DNA of 54,287 bases, the filler included, from Bipalium vagum (lineage: Eukaryota), in assembly GCA_037834085.1 (NCBI GenBank). It is 3 parts of 3 records of this genome, joined end to end, with 100 filler letters (N's around TTAATTAATTAA, not from the genome) between each part and the next. Parts side by side here need not be neighbours in the genome. Positions count along the whole stretch, not along the records: positions 1 to 17,085 come from JBBMKC010079177.1; 2 more parts are not named here. One strand, written 5' to 3'. Position numbers and translations under genes: made by a program. Under the pieces are notes generated by a model. The model was not told the origin of the DNA. It was given only the letters and a program-made list of their open reading frames with translations, and made no database searches. Positions 1-17,205 of this stretch are shown piece by piece. How positions within the stretch are numbered: position 1 is the first letter of the stretch; each line of letters begins with the position of its first letter.

Positions 1-400
1 CAAAGCCGGATCTGCATACAAAGAAAGTGATGTTATGCATTTGGTGGGATTGGAAGGGCATTGTTTATTATGAGCTGATTCCATTTGACCACACTATAAA
101 TGCGGAAAGGTATTGCGTTCAGTTAACAAAATTGAAAAAAGAGATCCAGAAGAAACGACCGGAATTGGTGAACAGAAAGAACGTGGTCTTTTTGCAGGAC
201 AACGCTACACCACATACTGCTTTGGCGACAAAACAATAAATAAAGGACTTTGGTTGGGAAGTAATGCAGAACCCACCGTACTCGCCAGACTTAGCTTCTT
301 CGGACTATCACCTCTTCCGATGTCTTCATAATCATCTGAACAATAAAACATTTAATTCAATGGAGGATATCAAAAAGTACCTGGAGAATTATTCTGCAGA
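1..400 (+). mobile_element. Mariner transposase relic, C-terminal DDD region
   Basis: KPDLHTKKVMLCIWWDWKGIVYYEL...FLQDNATPH, then after a stop/frameshift PPYSPDLASSDYHLFRCL. These are canonical mariner motifs, disrupted. Confidence 0.92.
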
Positions 401-1071
401 AAAATATATATTATAATATATTTGAAATAAAAGTTATTTTGAAATCACAAAGACAAACAAAAATACAGTCAGCATGTAAAACAAACTATATTAATAGTAA
501 ATTGTTTATTGATTCGTAGACTTTAAATGTTATTTCCTGAAAAAATTCTTATTCCAAATGTTATTTAATTAAAATGACAAAGTAAGTCTATTTATTATCA
601 GAAAATAGTCCTCTATATATCTTATTAACTAAGGCTCTAACACGTCTACTAAAGTTAGTGTAGGAGCATGGATTTTGAGATCATCCATAACTTCAAAAAC
701 AAGAGTCTCAAGTTCATCAGCTGAATTTGGATGAAACATATTGATAAATATCTGTATTTTTATTTCAGCATGAAGTAATTCAGTTTGACAGCATAAAGGT
801 TCATTTGTGGGATTATTAATGGTCAACCTAAAATGTAGGCGACCGAATGACCTTTGAAATATTATAGAACGTGTCACATGTAAAAAATTGCATAATTTTT
901 AGAGGCTAGTAAAACGCGTGTCTTGGAATTAATTATACCTTAAGATAATCATCACCTATTATCCAATAGCTGTCAAGTAAAGGTAAGGTTTGCTTTTTAT
1001 GTTGACTTTGTCTGAGTTACAAAAAATTTAAGTCCAAATATTTTAAATAAATTGAGTATTATTATTTGGAT

Positions 1072-1950
1072 ATATTAGGTTGGTAAATAAGGAAGGTCGT
1101 TTTCTGCATAGTTGAACTAGATGCAATGTTTTTTAAAATTTTTAAGTACCTAATGAATGATATATATCAATTATATATAAGTTATATCAAACAGTGAATT
1201 CTGGAATGTAATATGATAATATTTTTAAGTTATTATTTAAAAATTTGGAAATGAGAGCCTTGAGGATAGAAGGCATAGTATCCTAATATCAGCTCTTTAC
1301 AACGAAATAATAATGGTATAAATCGATGCAGATTTATTTATAAGGTGTGTATCAAAAGTCAAGATAGCTCACTGAATAATTGAGTCTATAATATTAAAGA
1401 AATAGGACTAAGAAAAACAGAGAAAGAAATGGAGATGCGAAAAAACTAGAAAAATGATTTTCACCTGAATTGTAAGAAAAAAATTAGAGTTATAAATTTT
1501 CGTTGATACTGATTATTGTTACAGAAAAGACATATTCCTCAACTATGTTCTAAGGTTTGACAAGAAATGGAATCTCAATCAAGATGAATTACTAAAATAC
1601 TTTCTCAAATACTTTCTATCTAAAGAAGATAATGTTAACAGCATAGTGGTCACAATCCGCTTTGTTTCATTACAGTCTCATTCTAGAAGATTAGAGTGGA
1701 AATATAACTGATGAAATCAAGGAAAAAAAAGTTTCAACGTATATTGGAATTCAGAAAAAAATCCTGCGTGTTTCAAATTTAACTCTGCAATCAGTGAAAC
1801 TTTGCTTTATCAACATTATTTGCCATGCTTGGCGCCGACGGATTACTATTTATTCAAACATCTCAGAAATTTCCTCATTCAAAAATTGCCCTAAAACCAA
1901 GATGATACTGAAACGATCCTTTAAGAGTTAGTCGACTTCAGAACTCTTTT
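1072..1950 (+). mobile_element. Highly decayed mariner element
   Basis: TIR-like TATTAGGTTGGTAAATAAGGAAGGTCGTTTT at ~1072 and a PCLAPTDYYLFKHLRNF (YSPDLAPxDY-like) motif at ~1823-1873. Confidence 0.65.
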
Positions 1951-2339
1951 TTTACGTTTTTTACTATTTAAACTCTTAGTTGTAATTATAAAACTAAAAG
2001 TTATGTTTCAATCTGACTATTTATTAAGTAGTGTAACAAAAATCAGTTTGAACAGGTAAAACTTTTTTGGTATTTCAGTGCTGTTAACTTAATATTCACA
2101 GTGAAAACAATACAAATAAAATAATTGATCAAGGTAACCGAGAGAAAAATAATCAATTGATTTTAAAATAAAATATCGATCAACCAATCCAATCTCAATC
2201 TCGATCCAGTCACTAGTGAATAATCACAACAAGTAAACAAATAAATAAAACGAATCTATCTTCAAATAGCTCAAATTCAAAATTCATAACAATTATAAAT
2301 AAAATATGAAATTTTAAAAAAACTAATAACAATTAATCG

Positions 2340-4240
2340 GTTTAACCAATAGGGAATTTTATTCAACCCATGGGCCATCAGACTACTTTCGGCTGTCTAA
2401 AGATGACGGAGGGCCACAGGATTGTCTATGTTGACTGTTGATACAGTATGCGGAGAGACTAGACTTACCACAGGTCTACAATATGTGCTAAAGGCGAAGA
2501 TTGAAATGACGGAATGGAATACAACTCAAATTCTGCACATCCATAAGCCCAAAAGGATGGCATTAAACGTTCCAAAACTTCAAACACCGTGCATTTTGGT
2601 GGATGAAGCAAAATCCATTCGTATTGAAAGAGCTATGAAATTATTGAATAAAAGGAAGGAAATTCCATAAAAAAATCAACCACAAGATGAATCACTATCA
2701 TTGTTATCATCATACGAGGACATAAACTTTTTTGGAGGCAATATATCTGGTGAGGAAATATTTGTAGTTGATGCTTCCAAATATCAGATAAAATCCTCGA
2801 AATGTCCAAACAAAAACTATGTAATTAAGAACAAAAAAACCACAGGATTGGATAAACACATTCAAACATATCACCACACAACCTTAACAAGACTCCAGAA
2901 AAAGAGGTGTTACTGTGGTCTAATCCTGCAGAGAGATATGTTTTATCATCTTATCGATGCGCATCCGGATAGCGGCGTTTTATCACATCAGTTGTTTACG
3001 AATATCTCTGAGATTTCGGTCACTTCCGGTGACCTAGACTCAAATTGACTAAGCCGGCTGGGAATCGAGGCTCTAATCCGATTTAGAATCTCAAATGATA
3101 CTACAACCTCATTCATTCGACCGGGTCCTGCTGTAGTCCTCCTTCGAAAGAAGATTGAAGATTTTTACACAAAACTTCCCTTTGCTATTACATTTGACTG
3201 GAAAAACATCCTCTGGTTGATGAACTGGGAGGGGAAACATTGACTCCTCTTTATTGCTGTCAATTCATCGCATCAGGCATTCCTCCTGGATCCAGCTCAA
3301 AGTGAATTGGATGTGAAGCAAAAGGTGTTTCACAACTTTCTCACAAAAATTGTGCAATATTTATCCTACCCCCAAAACAAATTGTTCCTCATGCCATCTG
3401 TCATAAGGGGTTTACCACTACAGGGAGATGACAATAATTGTGGATATTTTGTCTACAATTATGCCATCGACTATTGCCTAAAGGATCGGGCCTTTACGGC
3501 ATCGAATATTAATAGGATTAAGGAGGAACTAGTAGCACTGGTAGGAGGGATAATTGACCAAAGAAGAAAGCCTAAGAAGCGAAGAAAGAAACACAAAAAG
3601 AACTCATCTCCATGCTCCCGATACTCGAGGACGAAAATGCGGACTTGGAGATGATTTTGAAGGCAGGGAGAAGAGCTATATCTTCCCTGGATCCGATGCG
3701 TTATTTTGTCTAAGGTAAATAAAGTAAGTAATTACTTGTCAGTAATTACTTCCCAAGTAATGATGATTTTATAAATAACTTAACTAAGTCGGTTCCGCTG
3801 CCAATAGATAGGAACTTTTGGGATGAATTTCCATCTGTTAAGGAGACCATATAAGAGCTATTAACGATCGGAAAGGTGGAAGCGGCGTTTAAGAGGACTG
3901 GAAAATCCTCTCCTGAATCGGCCGGATTGACGTACGGGGACTGGATGAGTATAGACCCGGATCACTGGTTTTTCACCGCGGTCTATAACTTCATAGTTAG
4001 ATCTGGATGAATCCCCTCACAGTGGAAGAAATTCAATACAACACTACTCCCTAAGCCAGATAAGGACGATGCATTGCACTTAGTATCCTCCTGGAGACCT
4101 ATAGCTGTGATGGATACATCCTATAAAATCGTCATCCTCATTATAAATGCCAGAATGTTTGTATGGATACTGAGAGGGGTATCATCCATCGAAACCAGAA
4201 AGCATTAAATGCTTTCGATAGATGTGCGGAGCACAATGAA
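2340..4240 (+). mobile_element. 5' part of an RLE-type non-LTR retrotransposon (NeSL/R5-like): zinc fingers, Ulp1-like cysteine protease, N-terminal RT; truncated and decayed
   Basis: C2H2-like CPNK..HIQTYHH and CYCG..HLIDAH (2701-3048). Protease-like H(W->stop)...LLD...QGDDNNCGYFV (3238-3460). RT N-terminal motifs GKSSPESAGLTYGDW, IPSQWKKFNTTLLPKPDK, SWRPIAVMDTSYKI, NQKA..DRCAEHN (3850-4240). Confidence 0.85.
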
Positions 4241-7166
4241 TACATAATCAAATACCTAATGAAAATAATCAAATTGACGAAGAGACTTTATTTTGATGTA
4301 CCATATATTGTAATATTAAATAAATCGTTGTAAACTAATGTTGTATCATGATATTTTATCCATTACATTAAGTTCAACAGTGAAGCAGGTACTATTTAAC
4401 AATAGAAATGCTTCCTAAACTTTTGAAATGGACTGATATAACTTCTTACTGAGAAGGTTAACAAGTTTTAAGGTTTTTGTAACGGTTTATTTTATTAACT
4501 GAGAAATAAATGTTTGTACGTACATACTACGACTCTAGAATTAAAGAGCGTAGCATAAGTTTGCAATGGCAATCCCAAAAAAATACATATCCGAAGATAA
4601 TAAGTTATGTATAAAAGCTAATCCAGGGAAATTATTTAATGATTCAAGTTTATGAAAAGAAGTGGCAATTTTTGACACACCTGCTAACGAATATTATAAC
4701 ACTAAATATTATTTCATTTAGTCATAGAATAAATAATAGGGTAAGAAGTTAGCTTGAAATGAAACTGTATTACTTTATATAAAACCAGAGGAAATTGTTT
4801 GAAAGGGATCAATGTATTAATTACTATTACTATTAAGCAATTTTTTAACAAACAGAACATTAATTAATTAAATGCAAATTAAGAATTTCACCAGACCACA
4901 GTCTAAATTTGTATCTAATTTAACAAATTATTTCTTAATTTATTATGAAATATTAAAGCTTAAAAAATATAAAATGACATAAAATTCAATTTTTATTTTA
5001 ATATTTAATTATATTTCTTAATTTTATTTTCAACTTATTAAAAAATAATGTTAAATTATTTAATTTTTCAATATTTTTTGTATCAAATTTAAACCTCACT
5101 CCGACTCTTAGATGGTGAAAAATATCAACAATCAGTAAAGCAATATAATTTGTATTTATATCACAATGGTTCGCACAAACTATAATAATAACAATAACAA
5201 AAAATCGTCAAACTCAACAAAAGGATCACCAGAAATAGTAATTGTCAAAAATTAACCGAGGTAATCAAAACCAAACAGTTAATGTTAAATTTTTAATTGA
5301 ACATTAATCAAACTTACATAGTTAATTATAATATAGTTATATATTTTGCACGCTTATTGAGGGGTTGAATTGTGAGGAAATGCTTCTCCTTATATACTGA
5401 TTCTAAACTAACCAGTTTGGAGACGAGAACCCTCCAATTTCCCAAATTTGCTTCTTGATGATCATTTTTGGAGAGCTAATTGCTTCGTTTTCCCCATTTT
5501 CTCCCAAAATCTTCCATTAATTACTCTTTACAACGTATCATTATTATTTAAATTATTCTTGATAGGTTTTAATTAGGCTAAAAATAATCTTAGAGAAAAA
5601 TTTTTAAGGACGTTTTATGGGGTTAATTAAAATTTAATTAAACCTTAATTAATTAATTAAAAATTTATTTACATTTTAAAGGGGTATTTTATGGAGTATC
5701 GGATTTATTTTTTGAAGTTCCTGTGAGAAACTCAACATAATCAATAAATATTAAATGAATTTCAAAGAATTTGAAATTAATTATCAAAATTAAGTATTAA
5801 GTAAGTAAACATTTATTTATTATATTTATTTATTTATTTTATAAATTATTTATTATTATTATTATTTTACTTTATAATTTTTATAATTTTTATAATTTTT
5901 AATTTCAACATAAATATAAATAGGGAAGATTAAGATTTTAAGCATAAGATTTATATCAAGATTTTAGATCAAAAATATAAAAATTGAGTAATACATATTT
6001 ATTTTTAAGGTCTGGATATTAAGCTTTTTTTCGTAACCACTGATATATATAGCGTCCGAAACAATATTTTGACAATCTCTCTCAATAAAACTAAGGAAAA
6101 TTTTTGCAAATTTTATTTTCAAAGTAAAACAAGAAAAACTATGAAAACTTGAAAGAATACAACTATAAATATTTTAACAAAATTTTTAATAATAAGAAAT
6201 CATTCAAAGTAGAATTCCAAGGATAGTCAATTCACAGACCTGTGTTATTTTATCTGAAAATATAAATATATTATATATAAAATATAACAAATCATTGAAA
6301 ATTATTATGTTATGACTACTTCAAACTTTTTATTTCTAAATGAGTAATATAATTTTAAAAGTTAAGGTTTGAAGCTGTTATATTTTAAATATTTTGAATA
6401 ATATTTCATAAAAAATTTAATTTCAGATTGAAAATTGGTCACATCCCCCAAACACACAAGACTTTGTCCCAATTAATTATCATTTTTAAGAATAGTGAAT
6501 TAACAGAGAATAACAGTTTTGATCATATCTATGAAGCTAGAAGTTATTATGGTATGGAATTTTAAAAATGTTTGCCATAATGATAACAAGATGACAATAT
6601 TAACAATTGATTTTCTTCAATAAATCGAAGTTATCAAACAAATTTAATTATTTCACAATGAGATTTTCATTTCATTATTTAAATTTATTGATTTAATTTA
6701 AACATAAAATGTTATTATTTAATTGTTTACTTAATTAATATTCCATAATATTATTTTTCACATTCGATTATATTTAAAATGAAGNNNNNNNNNNNNNNNN
6801 NNNNNNNNNNNNNNNNNNNNNNNNNNNNNNNNNNNNNNNNNNNNNNNNNNNNNNNNNNNNNNNNNNNNNNNNNNNNNNNNNNNNNNNNNNNNNNNNNNNN
6901 NNNNNNNNNNNNNNNNNNNNNNNATATACCATATTAATATTAATATTATTTAAATTATAAAATTTCATAATATAATAACTCTTTATAACCTTAACATTTA
7001 AACAGGACGTAAAATTTGTAGAATATCTGAATTCTAGACAACGCTATGTTGAAATCTCCTATCATTTTTTTAAGAATTACCTTTTTTTTAAAGACCTCTT
7101 ACTTATTTTTATGAACAATCAATTTTAATCATTACGAATTTTGAGATGTCTATTTTATTGTTACCT

Positions 7167-10100
7167 TTATAAACTTTTTTCTAATGGTACACCATCTTCA
7201 GGTGTAATGACAACCAAGTAGGTGTCAATGTTACTGTTTTCTGTTACTGTTACATTTCCATGATATACGAATTCAAAATCTTTCTTCAACGTCTCTGCTA
7301 CGTAATCTGGAACTAGAATGCAAGCTTTATCGGGTGAGGTTTGACACATCAGGTCGGCCACATGTACAGTATCCCCCCAAACATCAAATATTGGTTTACT
7401 TGTCCCGATTAAACCTGTTAAAACCGGGCCAAAATTGTAACCGATTTTAAGATACAATTCAGTAGTTGTCACTCTGTTTTTTTCAATAATCAATTTGAAG
7501 TTATGATGCATTTCCACAGCAAAACTCATAAGACATTTGAGATGGTCGTCAGATTGGTCCCCATCATCAATCAATCCCGATGCTACCATATAACAATTGT
7601 TGATGGACCTAATTTTTTCCAGTTTTTTATAAACGGTTTTAACGTACATGTTATCGAATTTGCATATAATCATATTCAATAACTTCAAAGCCTTGTTTCC
7701 ACTTTCTATATCTTCTCTGTCGAATGATAGCAGAAAATTGGAAATGTACCCAAATATGATGCCCGCTTTTTCAAAATCTTTGGCATAATTGAAACTCATT
7801 TGCTTTTGATGTTTGTCTCCAACGATCTCCGAAAATACTGGTTTTGGAACTATGTTATAAAAGAGGCGTTCAGCGATGCTCTTTTCTCGTATTGCCTCAT
7901 CCTTTCGAATATCGGCTTCTCGAGCAATGAAAAAGTGCATTCTAATAATTCTTTCATTTTCTCTCGTTAAATAATAAACCAAAAGACAAACGTTAAGAAG
8001 CTGAAAAGTAAAATTACATTGGATCTGTATCATTCTATAGTTCAGGGCAGATGTAATATAAGAAGTACAATTGATAACGGACAACGGACTGTTGTTCGTG
8101 TTACCTTTCTGACCAAATATGACAAATTGTATGGGCAGCACTGTAAAGAGGCCTATTGTGACCAGTTTGACAATGCTCAATGTAGCAGATGATATGCAGC
8201 TGCCAATTAAACCGAAAATTGTCAAAGTCAAATAGGCTGCTGTATATGAATAATGGAGGTGGACCAGTTTCGTCTCGTGGAATGAAAATATCAAAACACT
8301 TGGCAAAGCGGAAATATAAACGCTGAAAAACAGTCTCATTACAGGATGGCTGCAGAAACAGTAGATAAACCGCAGGGCTGTGTTGTTGATCTCACTTTTA
8401 TAGAATAACGATATGAAAGCAACTATTACAACGACCAAATAGCTGCTACAATAAATCATTAGAGAATCGAGCTGAAATTCAACGATATCAGGAATCATTG
8501 TAAAAGCAACGAGCAATAAAACCGAGCTGTATATCAGACTTGCTATAGCATCAATCAATAGAGCCAACTTGATGGATACTATCCGTAGAGGTTCCACTTG
8601 ATCGGTCGTATGAAATAGATATTGGTGTTCGATCTCATTATCGAGAAACATTTGGGTCACTTTGTTGATGGGAGGATTTTTGAAAAATTCAATTGTCTGA
8701 TCTGGATCATGTTGAAGCATCTCAATTAGCTTCAATTCTCTTTTCACCTTTTGATCTTTCAAGATATATCTGCGAGACTGTTTGTTTTTCAGATACTTTT
8801 GTATGGTAAAAGAAACATGCATTTTATTCGATAAATTTTCTTGAAAAGTTGGACGGTGTTTAACTCTAAGGATTTTTTCCGGTCTCAAAATATCGGAACT
8901 ATCTAACGTTAAAAAATACGTTTGAATCTGAGAGGGTTTTGTAATTAATTGATCCATTTCAACCAGTTCAACTTTCTGTATTTCTAGTAAATGGCCTTCT
9001 TCGAATTTATATAAATTTTGTACAAATGAATAGGTATCCTCTGAAATATGGATCGATCCCGATTTCCCTTGGCATTTTAGACGGTGGGCAATTGTAGCAT
9101 CATAAGAAATGATATCAAATCGAAAGCGATGATTTCCCAATATGGCTGCTATCACTTGGCCGCTGTGAACTCCAATGCGCATTTCGATCTTTTCTTTATA
9201 ATCGAAATTGAATTTCACAATCATTCTAATGATTCCTATTCCCATTTCTATACAATGTATCGCATGAGCTGACTCAGGAGTCGGACATCCGGAAACGCAA
9301 TAATAACAGTCTCCCATTGTACATATCTTTTCACATTTATTTTCGGTTCCCAAATCATCAAGCCTGTCGAATAAATCATTCATCAACAAAACGACTTGTG
9401 TGACAGTTTTGTGGGAAATCATTTGATCGAATCCCACAATGTCAGCAAACAAAATACTGACATTGTCAAACTGTTCACAATAACACAAGTTGGACAGATT
9501 GTTATTTCTTACTTGATGTAAGATTTTTTCTCTGGCTCTGGTAGGAAAAGTAGCATCAACCCAGTATTGTTGGACTTCAATGGCCGAATCTATTTTCATG
9601 TTGGCTTCAACCTTTTGGGTCAACTTCATAAAGGCAGATTTTCTTCTGATTGAGTTGAAAAAACGCAAATACAAAGCCGTAAGGTATATCAAACAAAACA
9701 GAATACACTGGCCAGTTAGGAAATATTCCTTATTGCTCATACTGACTCGAAAGGCTCGAATGGATGTCAAAGGAGAATCGTAAAACTCCGTCATATTTAT
9801 CTTTTCAATGAATTTCTTCCGGTAATTGGAAATCAACACAAATATCATTATATAGATAACACTGAGCAACATGGTCAATAGAAATTTCAAACGGAATAAA
9901 GTGTACATCATCAAGATAATCAATACAGAAAGTGAATAGTGTACTTCCATGACTTCCATGTTGTCCGCTCCCAATATAACAGTATAGGTCATACAAATGA
10001 CGACCATTATTGACGAAAGGCGCATCATGACCACCGTTTGAACGACGTTTTTTGAGGCTATAAAGATGAAAAAGAAAATGCAAAAAATAACGAGGGCTAC

Positions 10101-10298
10101 GGACGGTCTGAATATTACTCCCCGTTCAGAAATATGGGACGAAATGATTTCGCAATAACAATAGAAAATTAAGATCTTCATTCCATTTCTCATTGACTTG
10201 ATATTGTTATTGTTCATAAGGGTATTGAAATAATCACTGAATATCGATGACTGTAAACTCATATGCTTGTTTAACTTGTCACAGGTAGTTTTGAACAT
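7167..10298 (-). CDS. ADCY9: Transmembrane adenylyl cyclase, ADCY9-like, intronless; probable catalytically impaired paralog
   Basis: 1043-aa ORF with M1-C1-M2-C2 layout. C1 has SILFADIVGF and KICTMGDCYYCVSGCP (AC9-type). C2 is degenerate: KIRSI, WGDTVHVADLM, no VKGKG. Confidence 0.9.
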   Translation of the reverse strand: MFKTTCDKLNKHMSLQSSIFSDYFNTLMNNNNIKSMRNGMKILIFYCYCEIISSHISERGVIFRPSVALVIFCIFFFIFIASKNVVQTVVMMRLSSIMVVICMTYTVILGADNMEVMEVHYSLSVLIILMMYTLFRLKFLLTMLLSVIYIMIFVLISNYRKKFIEKINMTEFYDSPLTSIRAFRVSMSNKEYFLTGQCILFCLIYLTALYLRFFNSIRRKSAFMKLTQKVEANMKIDSAIEVQQYWVDATFPTRAREKILHQVRNNNLSNLCYCEQFDNVSILFADIVGFDQMISHKTVTQVVLLMNDLFDRLDDLGTENKCEKICTMGDCYYCVSGCPTPESAHAIHCIEMGIGIIRMIVKFNFDYKEKIEMRIGVHSGQVIAAILGNHRFRFDIISYDATIAHRLKCQGKSGSIHISEDTYSFVQNLYKFEEGHLLEIQKVELVEMDQLITKPSQIQTYFLTLDSSDILRPEKILRVKHRPTFQENLSNKMHVSFTIQKYLKNKQSRRYILKDQKVKRELKLIEMLQHDPDQTIEFFKNPPINKVTQMFLDNEIEHQYLFHTTDQVEPLRIVSIKLALLIDAIASLIYSSVLLLVAFTMIPDIVEFQLDSLMIYCSSYLVVVIVAFISLFYKSEINNTALRFIYCFCSHPVMRLFFSVYISALPSVLIFSFHETKLVHLHYSYTAAYLTLTIFGLIGSCISSATLSIVKLVTIGLFTVLPIQFVIFGQKGNTNNSPLSVINCTSYITSALNYRMIQIQCNFTFQLLNVCLLVYYLTRENERIIRMHFFIAREADIRKDEAIREKSIAERLFYNIVPKPVFSEIVGDKHQKQMSFNYAKDFEKAGIIFGYISNFLLSFDREDIESGNKALKLLNMIICKFDNMYVKTVYKKLEKIRSINNCYMVASGLIDDGDQSDDHLKCLMSFAVEMHHNFKLIIEKNRVTTTELYLKIGYNFGPVLTGLIGTSKPIFDVWGDTVHVADLMCQTSPDKACILVPDYVAETLKKDFEFVYHGNVTVTENSNIDTYLVVITPEDGVPLEKSL

Positions 10299-11099
10299 AT
10301 TTTATAATGTATAGAAATATAATTAATCAATCGATTATTCATAAAATCATTATATGAATTTCGACATGTTTCATTATTGACTTTCAGTGAAAATTTTCTC
10401 TTCTAAATTTTCATTGTTTTTTAATAGTAAAGATTTTCTCAGGTCCCCCCTTTTTTCTCACATTTCCAATCTTCTTTTGACTACTTATTTAATGTTCTTA
10501 AAGCTTATTGAAGATATTATAATATGATAATATCAAAAGGTTGAAATAATAGCTCTTTAAGTGTGAAACATCCAACTTTAGTTGATATTTTGAATTTATT
10601 ATTTTAAATAATAAACATAAATATATTATGATAATCAATTAAACAATGAAAGTGTCATGATAATATGAACAGTTCACCAACTTATCGACAATGGAAGATA
10701 TGACAAAGATGATGTAAAAGTCTGCTGGTTCCAAATCTGGCAAATATGGATCGTTACGGATGTAATTGGATATGGATTTCTATTGAACTTAGCAAATATT
10801 TAGTATGAATTTAAAGTCTTATGTTAAAGTGAAGGCATTTGGTGACAGGGACTATATGTTTCTAAAGTTTTGAAAAACAAGTCCAGCTTTTGTATCACTT
10901 ATGTTCATCTAACCTCTCTCATAACCTATTCACTATTTTATAATGAAATCAAAAAAAGTAAGTATTCAATTAAATAAAAAAACAATTTGTCTCCAGAAAT
11001 TTCAATAAACAAAAATAATTATGGTGGCTCTCTTCTCAAAAAACTTAAAGGAATTATCTAAGTCACAAACCAGTTCTAATCCAAGATAAAATAAATTTT

Positions 11100-11980
11100 A
11101 CATTCTGTTTCCCACAAACCAGCATCTGTGCTAACAGCCTTTATTCATTATGGTAATTCTTCGTCACTTCAATTTGTTTATTTGTCTTATTATCCCTTAC
11201 TTGGATCCTTTCAATTATCAGATATTAAATACATTTTCAATAGGGTTCATATCTGGATTAGTAGTAGGCCGTGGCAGGACATTTAAGTCATTTCCTTGAA
11301 AAAAGTTTTTTGTTGATATGGAAACAAAAATTTTTTCTGTTGAAATAGTCTTTCAGTTGCTAGCAAAATATATGAATAACACAGGAGAACTGTTTTAACA
11401 GTATTTGATATACCTCTGAATTCAATATTCCTCATTGCACACTGTACAATGGTAAATAGTCATTAATGAAAAAGCACCCAAAATCATACAGTTGACTTGA
11501 CTTCGATTCTGCCACGTAGCTGGATATTTCTCAGCTTAATGTTCTCCCACAGGTGGACGAATATGTTGTGCAGGTATTTACGGAAAAACAACTCTCTTTA
11601 CTAAATGCTATGCGTGTCCAATCATCTATAATCCAGTACTGATGATTAGCTGCCCAATGGTTTTTTAGTTTCCGTATTATGTCATTCAACTTTAGTTTTA
11701 CTGATGGTCTATAAATTAGCAGTCCATTTGATATTAGTCTTCGTTGAATTGTCTTGACAAGAACAATAAGCAGAATTTTACTCTGTATTTGTAAAACATT
11801 ATGAACCTGTCACTTTCTCACAGTCACACAATGCACCACTCATCGCGAAGACTTGTAATTTTTATATTTCCATATAATTCTCCTCGACTTCGTTCAAGAT
11901 GGCCATTGTCTCATCTGTTGATAGCATCTTAAAACTATGGTTTGATTCAGCTTTAAATGATTTACCATTCTTTTGTAGCT
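11100..11980 (-). mobile_element. Tc1-like transposase relic
   Basis: Minus-strand WAANHQYWIIDDWTRIAFSKES and NVLPRPTTNPDMNPIEN (WP..SPDLNPIEN-like), with multiple disruptions. Confidence 0.75.
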
Positions 11981-11989
11981 CGATCTAGC

Positions 11990-12298
11990 ATAGAATTTTA
12001 CGGAAATAGTCAAAAAAGATGGAGTGTCACTGCTCAAACTTTTTTCATCTCTTCGAATGATTCACTGTCTTTTAATCCACACCTGTAGTCATATAGCATG
12101 CAACTGCACACCTGTTCTTTTGTCATCGGAGGATATGAGTCATTTGTACTTTTATTCAGCGTTTCTATTTTTAGTCTGGTGATGAAAATTTTGTTTTCAG
12201 GTTAGAAATTATTAAAGATTCAATAAAAAAGAATGCCACGTTCGCTTCTAACGACTGCTTGAGATTGACTCTGAGAACTTTTGTTAGAACCCTCGTAT
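11990..12298 (-). mobile_element. Mariner 5' end fragment
   Basis: TIR-like TACGAGGGTTCTAACAAAA at ~12298 (minus), followed by MTKEQVCSCMLYDYRCGLKDSESF, resembling the mariner N-terminal HTH. Confidence 0.6.
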
Positions 12299-12435
12299 AC
12301 ATGAGTTAATAAATATAAAATAAAACAAATAATAAATAACTTTTTCTTTAAAAAATTGATTTTAAAAAAACGAAAAAAATAATAATTTCTTGATGAACAT
12401 ATTTAATTAAAATTAATAATAAAAAGCTACAAAAG

Positions 12436-15400
12436 TTACCTTGACTTAATATTTTTCAAAAACAAATATTTTTTTTCATACGATCTCATCACCAAGTATG
12501 TTGTCATTTCTCCTTTTCCCTTCACGCTAACTAATCCATGGTATTTAAACTCAAAATAGACACTTAATTTTTCAGCCACATAATCTGGAACTTGTATACA
12601 ACTACCATGAGGAGACGTACTGTACATGCGACTAGCAACGTTCACTGTATCTCCCCAGATGTCATATAAAGGCTTTGTGGTGCCAATTATGCCCGCAGTA
12701 ATTGGACCAAAGTTATAGCCAATTTTAAGATAAAATGTGTTGGTACCAACTATGTATTGTTCGTTAAACAAGCGCAATTGGTGATGCATATCTAAAGCAA
12801 AGAGCATTAGAGATTTTAGATGATCATCAGATTCGGTATCGTCTTTTATTGAGGAATTCAGTCCAGATGCCAACATATAGCAGTCGTTGATGGTTTTAAT
12901 CTTCTCCAATTGAGAATAAATTGGCTTGCGCAATAAATTATCAAATATACATACAATCGAATGTAATAATTTTAGAGCTGCCACTCCCTTTTTGTAATCT
13001 TCTCTATAATATGATGAAAAGAAATTACTGATACAGGCAAATACTACTCCTGCTTTGAGAAAAGTGTGAGCATAAGAGAAACTCAAGTCTTTCTTGTTGT
13101 ACCATTTATTACCAACAATTTCGGAAAAAACTTGCTTAGGAATGATATTATAAAGAATACTTTCAGCAATCTTCTTTTCTCGAATTGCTTCAGCATTTCT
13201 GATGTTAGCTTCTCTGGTAGCATAAAAGTTTATGCGGGTATTTTTCTCATTTTCTCTGGTCAAATAATAAATAAACAGACTGACCTGAATGAATTGAAAA
13301 AGAACTTGATATCGAATCCTTGCCTTTATCATTTCAATGTTATTTCTTAAGTATATGGAACAATTACTAAAGAAAACCCTTTGTTTAAAACTATGATATT
13401 CGGAAGTATCTACTATAAAATAAATGGAAATACATGTATAAATGATTGTCGTGACATGTTTTAGTAAGCTGCAACACGTTGTCGAAATACAATTTCCAAT
13501 CAATGCAAATATGGTTATGCTAAAGTAGGCCGCAGCATATGCGTAGTTTTTGCTCATCAAATCCCTATCGAAAAATGTAAACGTTAAAAGACTGGGCAAC
13601 GATGACATGTAGATACTTAAGAACCCCCTTAACAGGGGATAACTCCAGAAACCATAAAAATATCTACAGAAAGAATTATTGATCTCGTTTTTATAAATCA
13701 ACGAAATGAACAATACTATTAAAGTAAATACATATCCACTGATGTATAAGATTGGACAGTAAATGGGAAATCTAAAATTCTGAGGAATTAGAATATATGC
13801 CGATATCAGAATAATAGTGGAAAATATCAGACTAGCTATGGAATCAATTAACAGAGCAATTTTAATTGAATAAATATGGAGCTTTTCCACTTGATCTGTT
13901 GTATGGAAAAGATAATTGTATTCTATTTCTTTGTCAGTGAACATCAATGTGATCTTGCTCATGGGTGGATTATAGAAGAACTCCACAACTTGCTCTTTGT
14001 CTTGTTGAAAGGATCGAATTATGTTTAAGTCCATTTTAATCCTTCTGTCCATCTTCTCAAAATTTGTTATAGGCTCATTCACTGTCTTAGGTTTTGTACT
14101 TTCAGTAATTGTAAAATTTTCATTTGATATATTGTGCATTTCGTTGATAAAGCTGAACTTTTTCGAAGGAGATCTCTTTTTCATTACAACGTTTTGTATT
14201 ACAAAGTATGTCTGTATAGGAATAGTTTTTTGGACCATTCCCGAAATTCCGTGCACTTTTTCTTTTTTGATTTCCAGCATTTCTCCTGTATCAAATTTGT
14301 ATGCATGACGTACTAGTACATATGTATCTTCTGAAATGTGTACTCTTCCAGGCTTACCACTTGATTCTAATAAATTGGCAATGATAACATCATATGAAAA
14401 TACGTCAAATCGAAATCGGTGATTTCCTATTATTGCTGCTATTACTCTTCCGCTATGGATTCCGATTCTCATATTCACTCTTTCATTGTGATCTCGATTG
14501 AATTTCAGAATCAGTCTGCACATTCCCAATCCCATTTCCACACAATTCATGGCATGGTCCAAACGAGGAGTGGGACATCCGGACACACAATAATAGCAAT
14601 CTCCCAATGTTCCGATTTTCTCACAATTAGTTTCCTTTCCTTTTTGGTCAAATCGGTTGTACAAATCATTCAAGAGAAAAACGAGCTGAGAAGCCGTTTT
14701 ATTTGAGCTCATTGCCGTAAATCCAACAATATCACCAAACAAAATGCTGACATTGTCAAAATTCTTAAAATAAAACAAATTGAATGCATCATTATTTCTG
14801 ATCTGTTTCAGAAATTGCTCTTTTACAGAATTAGGCATGCATGCCTCGATCCAATAGATTTGAACCTGAATAGCAGATTTCATTTTCATCTTGGCAACTG
14901 CATTTTGGGCTAACTTCAGAAAGGCCGACTTTCTTCGAATGGAATTGAAAAACCGTAAATATAGCCCAGTTAAATATGCTAATAAAAACAAAATAGTTTG
15001 TCCACATGTAAAGTAAAAACCATCTTTCATGTCTATTGGAAAAGCTCGAATATTCTCCAGATTTGGCTCCCTGTAATAGGTGAAGTTTATTTTTTCTATA
15101 TAATGGATTCGATAAGTCCCAATAGCAACGAAAATTATTATGTAAAGCAGACCCAACAGCAAGGTTATTAGGAATTTCAATCGAAACAATGTAAACATCA
15201 ATAATATAATGATGATGGTTAGAGAATAATGGATTTCCATTAATTCCAAACTATCATTACTGATAAGGACAGTATATATCATGCCGATCAAGACCATGAT
15301 CGATGCAAAATTCAACATAACACTCGTTTCATTGATTTTCATTGTTGTGACAAAAATTATAAAATAAATACAAAAGAGAATGAGTGCCAGTATTGGTCGA

Positions 15401-15588
15401 ACAATGACCCCTCTCTGAGACATGTGGGATGAAACTACTTCACAACAGCAATAATATATTAAAATTTTCATCCCATTTCTGATAGATTTAATATTTTGAT
15501 TTGTCATCAGGACATAAAAGTATTCACTTAATACTGCCGATCTTAGGCTCATAACCTTTCCTATTTGATCCAATAATAATTTAAGCAT
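12436..15588 (-). CDS. ADCY9: Transmembrane adenylyl cyclase, ADCY9-like, intronless; catalytic residues intact
   Basis: 1050-aa ORF. C1: SILFGDIVGFTAMSS, KIGTLGDCYYCVSGCP, GRVHIS. C2: KIKTI, YDIWGDTVNVASRM, VKGKGEMTTY. Two hydrophobic multi-TM blocks. Confidence 0.95.
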   Translation of the reverse strand: MLKLLLDQIGKVMSLRSAVLSEYFYVLMTNQNIKSIRNGMKILIYYCCCEVVSSHMSQRGVIVRPILALILFCIYFIIFVTTMKINETSVMLNFASIMVLIGMIYTVLISNDSLELMEIHYSLTIIIILLMFTLFRLKFLITLLLGLLYIIIFVAIGTYRIHYIEKINFTYYREPNLENIRAFPIDMKDGFYFTCGQTILFLLAYLTGLYLRFFNSIRRKSAFLKLAQNAVAKMKMKSAIQVQIYWIEACMPNSVKEQFLKQIRNNDAFNLFYFKNFDNVSILFGDIVGFTAMSSNKTASQLVFLLNDLYNRFDQKGKETNCEKIGTLGDCYYCVSGCPTPRLDHAMNCVEMGLGMCRLILKFNRDHNERVNMRIGIHSGRVIAAIIGNHRFRFDVFSYDVIIANLLESSGKPGRVHISEDTYVLVRHAYKFDTGEMLEIKKEKVHGISGMVQKTIPIQTYFVIQNVVMKKRSPSKKFSFINEMHNISNENFTITESTKPKTVNEPITNFEKMDRRIKMDLNIIRSFQQDKEQVVEFFYNPPMSKITLMFTDKEIEYNYLFHTTDQVEKLHIYSIKIALLIDSIASLIFSTIILISAYILIPQNFRFPIYCPILYISGYVFTLIVLFISLIYKNEINNSFCRYFYGFWSYPLLRGFLSIYMSSLPSLLTFTFFDRDLMSKNYAYAAAYFSITIFALIGNCISTTCCSLLKHVTTIIYTCISIYFIVDTSEYHSFKQRVFFSNCSIYLRNNIEMIKARIRYQVLFQFIQVSLFIYYLTRENEKNTRINFYATREANIRNAEAIREKKIAESILYNIIPKQVFSEIVGNKWYNKKDLSFSYAHTFLKAGVVFACISNFFSSYYREDYKKGVAALKLLHSIVCIFDNLLRKPIYSQLEKIKTINDCYMLASGLNSSIKDDTESDDHLKSLMLFALDMHHQLRLFNEQYIVGTNTFYLKIGYNFGPITAGIIGTTKPLYDIWGDTVNVASRMYSTSPHGSCIQVPDYVAEKLSVYFEFKYHGLVSVKGKGEMTTYLVMRSYEKKYLFLKNIKSR

Positions 15589-16039
15589 ATCTTCTTTTAC
15601 AAGATTGATTGTTTGAAATAATCGATCTGATAGATCTGATTTTTGAAATAATTTATAAATTATAATTATTTTTTTTTCAGTTTATAATCTAAATGTTTTT
15701 AACGACATGTTCGACATTGTTGATTGTAATAAATAATTATTTATTTTTAACAATTGATATGTTGTTAAACTTTTATGTTATATTAGTTTTTTATTTGAAA
15801 TATTAAGCTCCTAAAAATGTGTTTGATGTAAGAGAAATGGTAACTTAACATAAAATAGGTTATCCAAAAGAAATGTGTACGTTAGAATAAAGTTTTACAA
15901 TATTTAAAATTAATTTAGTAAAGAATAATCAACTGTAGATTAACTCCAAATAATGTTGGTTTGGATATTTGACAAGATAAAGTAATTATATACAGGAAAG
16001 GAAAGATGAAAGAACATCACAAACATACAAAGATATCAC

Positions 16040-16510
16040 AGAATAGTCAGATCAGCAATGTTTTTCGAATTACAATAATCTAATAATTTCAGTCGTGTGT
16101 TCGATATGGCTGCCCTATGAGACTGGTTGAGGCATTGTTGATTTGATTCCCACTCAGTCCGAGTCTGTTGAGGGTGTGATCATTTTGAGGGTCCCATTCA
16201 ATTGTCACAGTCCATCATTGGTATTTTCTCCTCGACAGTTCGGCTAGATTCTGATATATCCTCTCATTGTTTCTCCTTGATGAGCATATATTTTCCCATT
16301 CATCGTACAGAGATTTAATATCCAGAAGAAAGATGTGTTTGCTTTTTCAGATTAGAGCTGAATATCAGGTCTGTCCTGGCTTTCAACATCTGGAAGTGAA
16401 CTGTTAACAAGAATTTTAAAGTTAACTTGTTGTAGGAATGGTATCAGAGTGTTCTGAATATTGTTATGCCGGCTATAGACTTTTTCATATTGCAGTGGTT
16501 GAACTGTAAA
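16040..16510 (-). mobile_element. 3' fragment of an RLE-type non-LTR retrotransposon (restriction-like endonuclease)
   Basis: Minus strand reads NHCNMKKSIARHNNIQNTL...QDRPDIQL...IFLLDIKSLYDE...WDPQNDHTLNRLGL: RHN, RPD..D and WDPxN motifs. Confidence 0.75.
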
Positions 16511-16572
16511 ACACTAATTTTTTTCAGAATAAAGAATAATCACTATATTGTCATTTATTGTTATTTTGTCTA

Positions 16573-16610
16573 GAATTTGGGACTGAATTGGGGACTGAAT
16601 TGGGGACCGG
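16573..16610. repeat. Short tandem repeat (GAATTGGGGACT-like unit, about 3 copies)
   Basis: gaatttgggact gaattggggact gaattggggacc read directly from the sequence. Confidence 0.8.
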
Positions 16611-17205
16611 GTCTGGTAGTCTCCACACTATATAATATTTTATTTATTATTTTTATAACCATATAATCTGACTAATAAAAAAAGAAAAATACTTTTTTGT
16701 TTCGGGTTCTTTCTTTTACGAAAAAAGCTAGAAATAAAATCATTTTTATACACTCAATAAGTGTCACATTGGATTAAGAATATTGAAATTTTGTACGGCG
16801 TGGGTCAAGGAGGCTCTACAAATATAATTCGGTTTATCTACAGATCTCTTAATCGACTTAGATATAAATTTTATTACCATTATGGTATTTTAGAAATTAG
16901 GTATATATATATTGAGTTGTTCAAAAAGTCAGTGCGTTTTTTTTGTAGTTTTGTTAATTTGAGATTTTTTACTTAATATACACCGCTATATATCAATATT
17001 TACAATTAATTGTTTATTTACATTAAAAATTAAAATGTAAGTACAGTTTGACCTTCATTTTTTAAACTTATCATGTTTTTATAGGNNNNNNNNNNNNNNN
17101 NNNNNNNNNNNNNNNNNNNNNNNNNNNNNTTAATTAATTAANNNNNNNNNNNNNNNNNNNNNNNNNNNNNNNNNNNNNNNNNNNNGTGGAGTTAAATCGG
17201 GAGAT

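Follow-up and report, generated by a model that had tools for sequence, protein, structure and literature searches.

Vertebrate AC9 (6R3Q, 7PD4, 9U3R) is a membrane adenylyl cyclase built from six transmembrane (TM) helices, a helix and a first cyclase domain (C1), followed by six more TM helices, a further helix and a second cyclase domain (C2). Two neighbouring genes of the flatworm Bipalium vagum encode proteins with the same layout. They lie in the first piece (positions 1-17085, contig JBBMKC010079177.1, here C79177) of the window analysed, a stretch of 54,287 nucleotides joined from three parts of assembly GCA_037834085.1, which totals 440 Mb in 272,664 contigs. We refer to them as copy A (7167-10298, minus strand) and copy B (12436-15588, minus strand). 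Compared with vertebrate AC9, the flatworm genes are intronless, about 300 amino acids shorter and devoid of the extended C-terminal tail that follows C2; overall identity is 22-29%, and the flatworm genes fall in a flatworm-specific clade. Copy A, in addition, has lost the catalytic residues of C2. We consider it probable, at about 0.72, that copy A is an old tandem duplicate maintained by selection as a full-length, non-catalytic membrane pseudo-cyclase, a reading drawn from comparison of sequences.

Several described systems resemble this situation in part. Class III dimers, such as the C1/C2 membrane cyclases and the alpha/beta soluble guanylyl cyclase, tolerate one degenerate pocket, which is used for regulation, the forskolin site being an example. 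In those proteins, however, one site is active, whereas in copy A it is the normally active site that has lost its C2 half, so that a complete active site appears to be absent within the copy A chain. The ACX genes of Drosophila, adenylyl cyclase paralogues of the male germline that lie in clusters and evolve fast, represent a lineage-specific tandem expansion like the flatworm genes, but they are reported to be active and belong to a different subfamily from the AC9-like genes of the flatworm. A full-text literature search for 'pseudocyclase' or 'pseudo-cyclase' found no paper, and to our knowledge there is no description of a membrane adenylyl cyclase that occurs naturally, at full length, and has been maintained despite the loss of catalysis. 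A precedent for a non-catalytic role is AC6mut, a full-length membrane cyclase that does not synthesise cyclic AMP (cAMP) and still has cellular effects (PMC5540275); it is a laboratory point mutant, whereas copy A is a natural paralogue with several motifs lost and, apparently, a long selection history. Pseudoenzymes of other families, such as pseudokinases and pseudophosphatases, have kept the fold and lost the catalytic motif while the gene was retained by selection, usually as an allosteric partner, scaffold or competitor of an active paralogue (PMC5106787, PMC10211241). Copy A seems to be like them in having retained its fold with key catalytic residues lost.

Copies A and B are the only two open reading frames (ORFs) of at least 150 amino acids in the piece, arranged head to tail on the minus strand, and neither contains an intron. 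Copy B encodes an AC9-like membrane adenylyl cyclase of 1050 amino acids with all canonical catalytic motifs. Its paralogue, copy A, has an open frame for 1043 amino acids with degenerate C2 catalytic residues, which makes it a candidate pseudo-cyclase. Each protein contains two PF00211 cyclase domains (E 4e-75 for copy A and 4e-91 for copy B) and two membrane-helix bundles of six helices, each bundle ahead of a cyclase domain. In a PDB sequence search the best solved relative was AC9 (about 400 bits, E 3e-118 for copy B; AC5 scored 307 bits and AC8 299), and the nearest named database proteins carry AC9 annotation. The initial annotation of this DNA, which had proposed a tandem ADCY9-like pair at these minus-strand coordinates, is thus borne out. 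It had also described the 1043-codon frame and TM layout of copy A as unbroken and the copy itself as strongly diverged from its neighbour. Both descriptions hold: a single ORF spans 7167-10298, the hydropathy peaks of the two proteins correspond in position, and identity is 51% in an alignment that runs over the full length from the first Met. At the nucleotide level the two frames differ at 40% of positions, and all nine of the nine length differences between them are whole codons.

Catalytic residues were compared in an alignment of 22 rows, which comprises copies A and B, four further same-genome paralogues, seven sequences of flatworms taken from public assemblies, AC9-like proteins of trematodes and cestodes, two proteins from molluscs or nemerteans and one bird AC9. 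Copy B has every canonical class III element, in agreement with the initial annotation. Copy A stands alone among the 22 rows at four motifs, and its motif coordinates were verified by translating the codons directly. In C1, GFT has become GFD (T291D, codon 9426-9428, within DIVGFD at 9426-9443). In C2, KIKTI has become KIRSI (K897R and T898S, codons 7605-7610; IRS at 7605-7613), NVASRM has become HVADLM (N979H, 7362-7364; S982D and R983L, 7350-7355; HVADL at 7350-7364), and VKGKG has become VTENS (K1019T, G1020E, K1021N and G1022S; TENS at 7233-7244). These are the changes that had been reported at the outset, and they are absent from the 21 other aligned members. Each C2 residue lost from copy A is unvarying in the 20 other full-length family members compared. 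The NxxSR motif reads N[VI][AS]SR in copy B and 20 other aligned members and HVADL in copy A; KGKG is unvarying in the other 21 aligned members, copy B included, where copy A has TENS. Among the nearest database proteins, the C2 Asn/Arg motif WGxTVNxASRM is present in 120 of 120.

In class III cyclases, the Asn/Arg pair stabilises the transition state and a Lys/Asp pair reads the adenine (PMC4886424). Both flatworm copies have the C1 metal Asp pair (DIVGF and GDCYY; in copy A, D286 at 9441-9443 and D330 at 9309-9311). Copy A also retains the adenine Asp (FDVWG), and the Lys of the adenine position is Arg (KIRSI). Because an active mycobacterial cyclase, Rv1900c, has His where Asn is usual (PMC4886424), N979H alone would not be inactivating, and the case for inactivity therefore rests mainly on R983L, the loss of KGKG and T291D. 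Judged from these residues, synthesis of cAMP by copy A is very probably slight or absent. Binding of nucleotide may persist, since the metal Asp pair and the adenine Asp are retained.

One further residue had been listed as a marker of lost catalysis, and this part of the initial annotation does not stand. The Arg of GRVHIS in C1 is Ser in copy A, but the same position is occupied by R, K, Q, F or M in other members that look normal, bird AC9 included, so that the Ser is not diagnostic. The residue is Phe or Gln in the otherwise canonical proteins P0001, P0003 and P0004 of other species and in the same-genome paralogues C233889 and C24738, and the Arg seems to be dispensable in this flatworm cyclase family.

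The residues that copy A has kept are also what would be expected if it were still an active nucleotide cyclase, or another enzyme with a remodelled site, in which the fast change of C1 and C2 described below reflected adaptive retuning. The metal Asp pair, the adenine-specifying Asp and the fold are all retained, Lys to Arg at the adenine position is a conservative change, the His in place of Asn has its counterpart in Rv1900c, and selection still screens the replacements in C1 and C2. We regard an active enzyme as unlikely, however, given that the transition-state Arg is now Leu, that the phosphate-binding KGKG loop has neither Lys and neither Gly, and that an acidic Asp has replaced the GFT Thr beside the triphosphate site. 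The lost residues do not vary in the 20 full-length relatives, and the Asn/Arg motif is likewise constant among the 120 nearest proteins; the coupling helix ahead of C1 is heavily altered too, and no compensating basic residues were identified.

A swapped active site was also considered. At residues 395-409 of C1 (9072-9116, minus strand) copy A reads IAHRL, where relatives have IAN(L/S/D/T)(L/M), which puts an Arg at the site matching the C2 catalytic Arg; the residue at this position varies across the family. A swapped site was rejected because C2 is without the first metal Asp and, in copy A, the second is changed (INDCYM to INNCYM). The INDCYM motif, whose Asp matches the second C1 metal Asp, is found in C2 in this flatworm clade; the AC9 of other animals lacks this Asp.

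Pairwise dN/dS estimates (NG86 and YN00, per domain, among copy A, copy B and P0002) gave no usable ratio, synonymous sites being saturated or undefined, and for this reason branch-restricted codon counts and relative-rate tests were used instead. In the relative-rate tests, P0002 served as the outgroup, and changes private to copy A were compared with changes private to copy B. The N-terminus with the first TM bundle (bundle at 9654-10211, about residues 30-215, placed from AlphaFold2 (AF2) helices and hydropathy; all domains of copy A are on the minus strand) had 15 A-only and 26 B-only changes (p 0.12). For the second bundle (7974-8573, about residues 576-775, from AF2 helices) the counts were 35 and 27 (p 0.37), and for the linker 18 and 14 (p 0.6). 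By contrast, C1 (8910-9482, residues 273-463, from the Pfam stretch) had 38 A-only against 8 B-only changes (p 9e-6) and C2, where the catalytic residues are lost (7209-7787, residues 838-1030), 46 against 7 (p 4e-8). The most altered part was the pre-C1 helical, or coupling, segment (9483-9602, residues 233-272), with 11 against 1 (p 0.006). Other outgroup sets gave the same domain pattern.

In copy A, the rate of change in C1, C2 and the pre-C1 helix was 5-11 times that in copy B (among pre-C1 helix sites where the outgroups agree, 52% versus 9.5% changed). The usual order of rates is reversed in copy A, with 30% of agreed-ancestry sites changed in the catalytic domains versus 19% in the membrane domains (p 0.009). 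Of sites that are otherwise invariant, 29 out of 116 have changed in copy A, versus 0-3 in every other full-length member tested. At these invariant sites the hydrophobic changes of copy A are conservative (L>M, V>I, F>L) and the polar active-site changes radical. The 84 A-only replacements in C1 and C2 have a mean BLOSUM62 score of 0.21, compared with -0.39 for random non-synonymous changes (p 0.001).

The branch-restricted counts took in only those codons at which copy B and the outgroup are identical, which fixes the ancestral state. On the copy A branch, the proportion of synonymous differences (pS) was about 0.77, which is saturated, and the proportion of non-synonymous differences (pN) was 0.19 for the catalytic and 0.12 for the membrane domains; on the copy B branch, pN was 0.035 and 0.107, respectively. 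Changes on the copy A lineage at codon positions 1, 2 and 3 amounted to 0.24, 0.15 and 0.49. Taken with the other lines of sequence evidence, these patterns show that the catalytic core was remodelled while copy A was still selected for full-length translation. Maintenance of copy A by purifying selection is well supported by the substitutions read from this one genome.

Could copy A instead be a dead duplicate that has, by luck, escaped stops and frameshifts so far? Its catalytic residues are lost, its overall protein rate is 2.4 times that of copy B, decayed transposons lie around it, the sole public run that contains the locus is DNA with no RNA run, and its orthologue was not found elsewhere. 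A dead gene, however, should accelerate throughout, and copy A is not a decaying pseudogene by this measure because only the catalytic domains and the pre-C1 helix are fast, the membrane domains being as constrained as those of copy B. Its pN/pS is far below 1 on its own branch, its replacements are conservative, the length differences from copy B are all whole codons, and the transposon frames nearby are broken where that of copy A is open. We also simulated AT-biased neutral mutation of a 1050-codon frame. After 1% divergence the frame stayed free of stops with a probability of 0.16, which fell to 0.027 for 2% and to less than 3e-4 for 5%. To lose a quarter of the invariant residues by drift would need about 12-13% divergence, which adds about 15-20 stops, so that drift sufficient to explain the catalytic changes would leave the frame open with a probability of about 1e-7 or less. 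Only death at about 2% divergence or less is compatible with the open frame, and so recent a death leaves the pattern of change unexplained. We therefore judge a pseudogene improbable. That copy A is selectively maintained and not a young pseudogene, as had been suggested initially, agrees with the domain-specific acceleration, the low pN alongside saturated synonymous sites, the conservative replacements and the stop-codon simulation.

An assembly or sequencing artefact, in which copy A would be chimeric or mis-assembled, was weighed against the same data. The assembly is highly fragmented, as its contig count indicates, and a run of Ns lies 245 bases downstream of copy A. On the other hand, the degenerate residues are spread across four separate motifs of one continuous 3.1-kb frame, which differs from copy B in 40% of its nucleotides, and all sampled 31-mers of the region occur in the single public run, possibly the assembly's own source. 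Errors would not produce divergence that is domain-specific and biased by codon position. The probability of an artefact is, in our view, very small.

The tree is in keeping with an old origin of the pair. In it, the other same-genome paralogues pair one to one with P0002-P0004 from other species, and full support unites copies A and B with P0001 in one clade. Within this clade the best tree joins copy B to P0001 (support 68/65), and the approximately unbiased (AU) test does not reject the grouping of A with B (p 0.26). Because the three form one clade with an unsettled inner order, the A/B duplication is, on phylogenetic grounds, an old event of about the same age as the divergence from the P0001 species, and the tree places it neither before nor after that speciation. 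An old duplication is also in line with the saturation at synonymous sites and with flanks that do not align; a blastn comparison of the flanks of copy A with those of copy B found low-complexity matches only and no shared duplication unit.

At least three more full-length intronless paralogues are present in the same genome, on contigs C24738 (L003), C233889 (L004) and C57432 (L005), the last on a long branch. Another, on C255226 (L006/L007), is cut by the contig end, several fragments were found, and C237 (L008, L012, L015) matches the cyclase exon by exon. Altogether, the intronless AC9-like family of this genome counts no fewer than five or six paralogues, and the catalytic motifs of all of them are canonical. 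Two contigs of 335 bp each, C32108 and C32081 (L013 and L014), carry near-identical N-terminal cyclase fragments with few residue differences; these are either haplotypes that were not collapsed or the product of a very recent duplication of the C255226-type paralogue. The nearest named cyclases in protein databases are from trematodes, because planarian proteins are scarce there, and a search for literature on planarian or flatworm cyclase expansions found nothing. An intronless mortalin ORF of the same genome shares 88% identity with Dugesia japonica mortalin, 93% with a protein from another assembly and 66-83% (mostly 80-83%) with the remaining named matches, as would be expected of a triclad-like, free-living flatworm absent from protein databases.

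Some considerations weigh against a maintained, non-catalytic copy A. Gene death at about 2% divergence or less could leave no trace. A search of public sequencing runs for the locus found one run, of DNA type, and no RNA run; contigs of this single run over the locus are patchy pieces, with repeat pile-ups on transposon remnants, and holes in them prove nothing; no paper was found to mention run SRR21676451. We infer the inactivity of copy A from its residues only, and N979H, the metal Asp pair and the adenine Asp are all compatible with activity. No orthologue of copy A was found in other species, the best database match being 52% identical, and the branch along which copy A would have lost catalysis is long. 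Lastly, it is adjacency only that links copy A to copy B, which makes a partner or dominant-negative mechanism a plausible guess.

With these points in mind, the history of a maintained pseudo-cyclase may be outlined as follows. Copies A and B would have arisen long ago by tandem duplication, in a family of intronless AC9-like membrane cyclases that is specific to the lineage. Copy B would have remained an ordinary cyclase. Copy A would have lost those residues of C2 by which ATP is positioned and stabilised in the transition state, namely the NxxSR Arg, the KGKG loop and the adenine-contacting Lys, together with the C1 GFT Thr, and would have been kept by selection as a full-length, folded membrane protein of 12 helices. 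Its membrane domains would be under the same constraint as those of copy B, while its catalytic core and coupling helix would be freed from catalytic constraint and still constrained to fold. Its likeliest mode of action would be non-catalytic. Through its membrane domains and cytosolic core it could join cyclase complexes, with copy B or another paralogue, Gs-alpha or scaffolds as partners, and in this way, perhaps as a regulatory or dominant-negative partner, adjust how much cAMP is produced or where. Alternatively, copy A might act as a membrane-domain 'receptor' without enzyme output.

A non-catalytic role of this kind is plausible because membrane cyclases dimerise, partly via their TM domains (PMC12414865), because these domains can act as lipid receptors (PMC11606603), and because engineered, catalytically inactive AC6 has biological effects (PMC5540275). 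A role for copy A as partner, scaffold or dominant-negative is what we infer from these parallels; of the roles proposed in the initial annotation, regulator, dominant-negative and sensor partner of the adjacent cyclase are candidates, and for that of 'C1 donor' there is no specific support.

It is recognised that the purpose of the large membrane domains in adenylyl cyclases is not settled, and one paper writes of "a signal transduction blind spot" (PMC12414865). That copy A keeps its membrane domains under the constraint of its active neighbour, in a protein that has dropped catalytic residues, argues for a role beyond anchoring an enzyme. We suggest tentatively, and with rather more doubt than confidence, that copy A is the first natural membrane pseudo-cyclase, one in which the membrane domains were kept after catalysis was given up, with a function of their own, separate from cAMP synthesis in that chain, in ligand sensing, complex formation or control of paralogues. 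If this is true, membrane adenylyl cyclases would join the enzyme families that have spawned regulatory pseudoenzymes. The evidence base is evolutionary and comes from one fragmented genome. The side-by-side pair of active and dead copies would offer a ready-made test bed for heteromerisation, dominant-negative control and ligand sensing.

The 22-row alignment was the input for an AF2 model of copy A. With a mean predicted local distance difference test score (pLDDT) of 78 and a predicted TM-score (pTM) of 0.71, the model contains 12 helices in two bundles, within residues 18-250 and 576-814, along with two alpha/beta cyclase folds. When the model was searched with Foldseek, full-length human and bovine AC9 ranked first, with a TM-score of 0.85 on the target. 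The model is consistent with copy A being a folded protein and is weak evidence on the fold, because the alignment drives it.

The DNA around the two genes is AT-rich (GC of 17-41% per kb across the piece) and contains decayed transposons. The 2137-bp spacer between the genes (10299-12435) holds broken transposon remnants and short open frames only, among them weak matches to HTH_48 (the Mos1 helix-turn-helix, HTH; 12037-12201, minus strand) and to HTH_Tnp_Tc3_2 (the Tc3 HTH; 11534-11809, minus strand). At the start of the piece lies a frameshifted mariner-type transposase remnant (3-413, plus strand), which matches PF01359 at 3-236 (E 5e-23) and continues in another frame at 240-413. Possible mariner/Tc1-type remnants at 1715-1891 (plus strand) and 10642-10779 (minus strand) were recognised by eye from motifs only. 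All transposon reading frames around the cyclase genes are broken by stops or frameshifts, which matches the earlier description of copy A as surrounded by decayed DNA. An Rfam scan of the window found no match.

Other features of the piece concern neither gene directly. Two adjacent open frames of 125 and 136 amino acids lie at 2671-3651 (plus strand), in the sole GC-richer kilobase (41% GC). The second contains a 'DDNNCGYF' motif reminiscent of Ulp/C48-type cysteine proteases and has a Lys/Arg-rich tail; in Pfam the frames had no match beyond a weak, aberrant zinc-finger, and they may be part of an unclassified mobile element. A short frame at 4011-4205 (plus strand), reading '...SWRPIAVMDTSYKIV...', resembles a fragment of a non-long-terminal-repeat (non-LTR) reverse transcriptase, with no Pfam match at E 0.1. 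The N run downstream of copy A occupies 6786-6922, is either an assembly gap or masked sequence, and is separated from the stop codon by the 245 bases mentioned above. About 1 kb upstream of copy B, at 16573-16607, a 12-bp tandem repeat, GAATTGGGGACT, is present in 2.9 copies with 95% matches. Elsewhere in the genome, the HSP70 family is represented by at least ten long open frames, mostly uninterrupted and some with one or two stops (among them C136370, C225884, C225715 and C163577; L023-L026), which suggests an intronless family that has expanded and is partly decaying.

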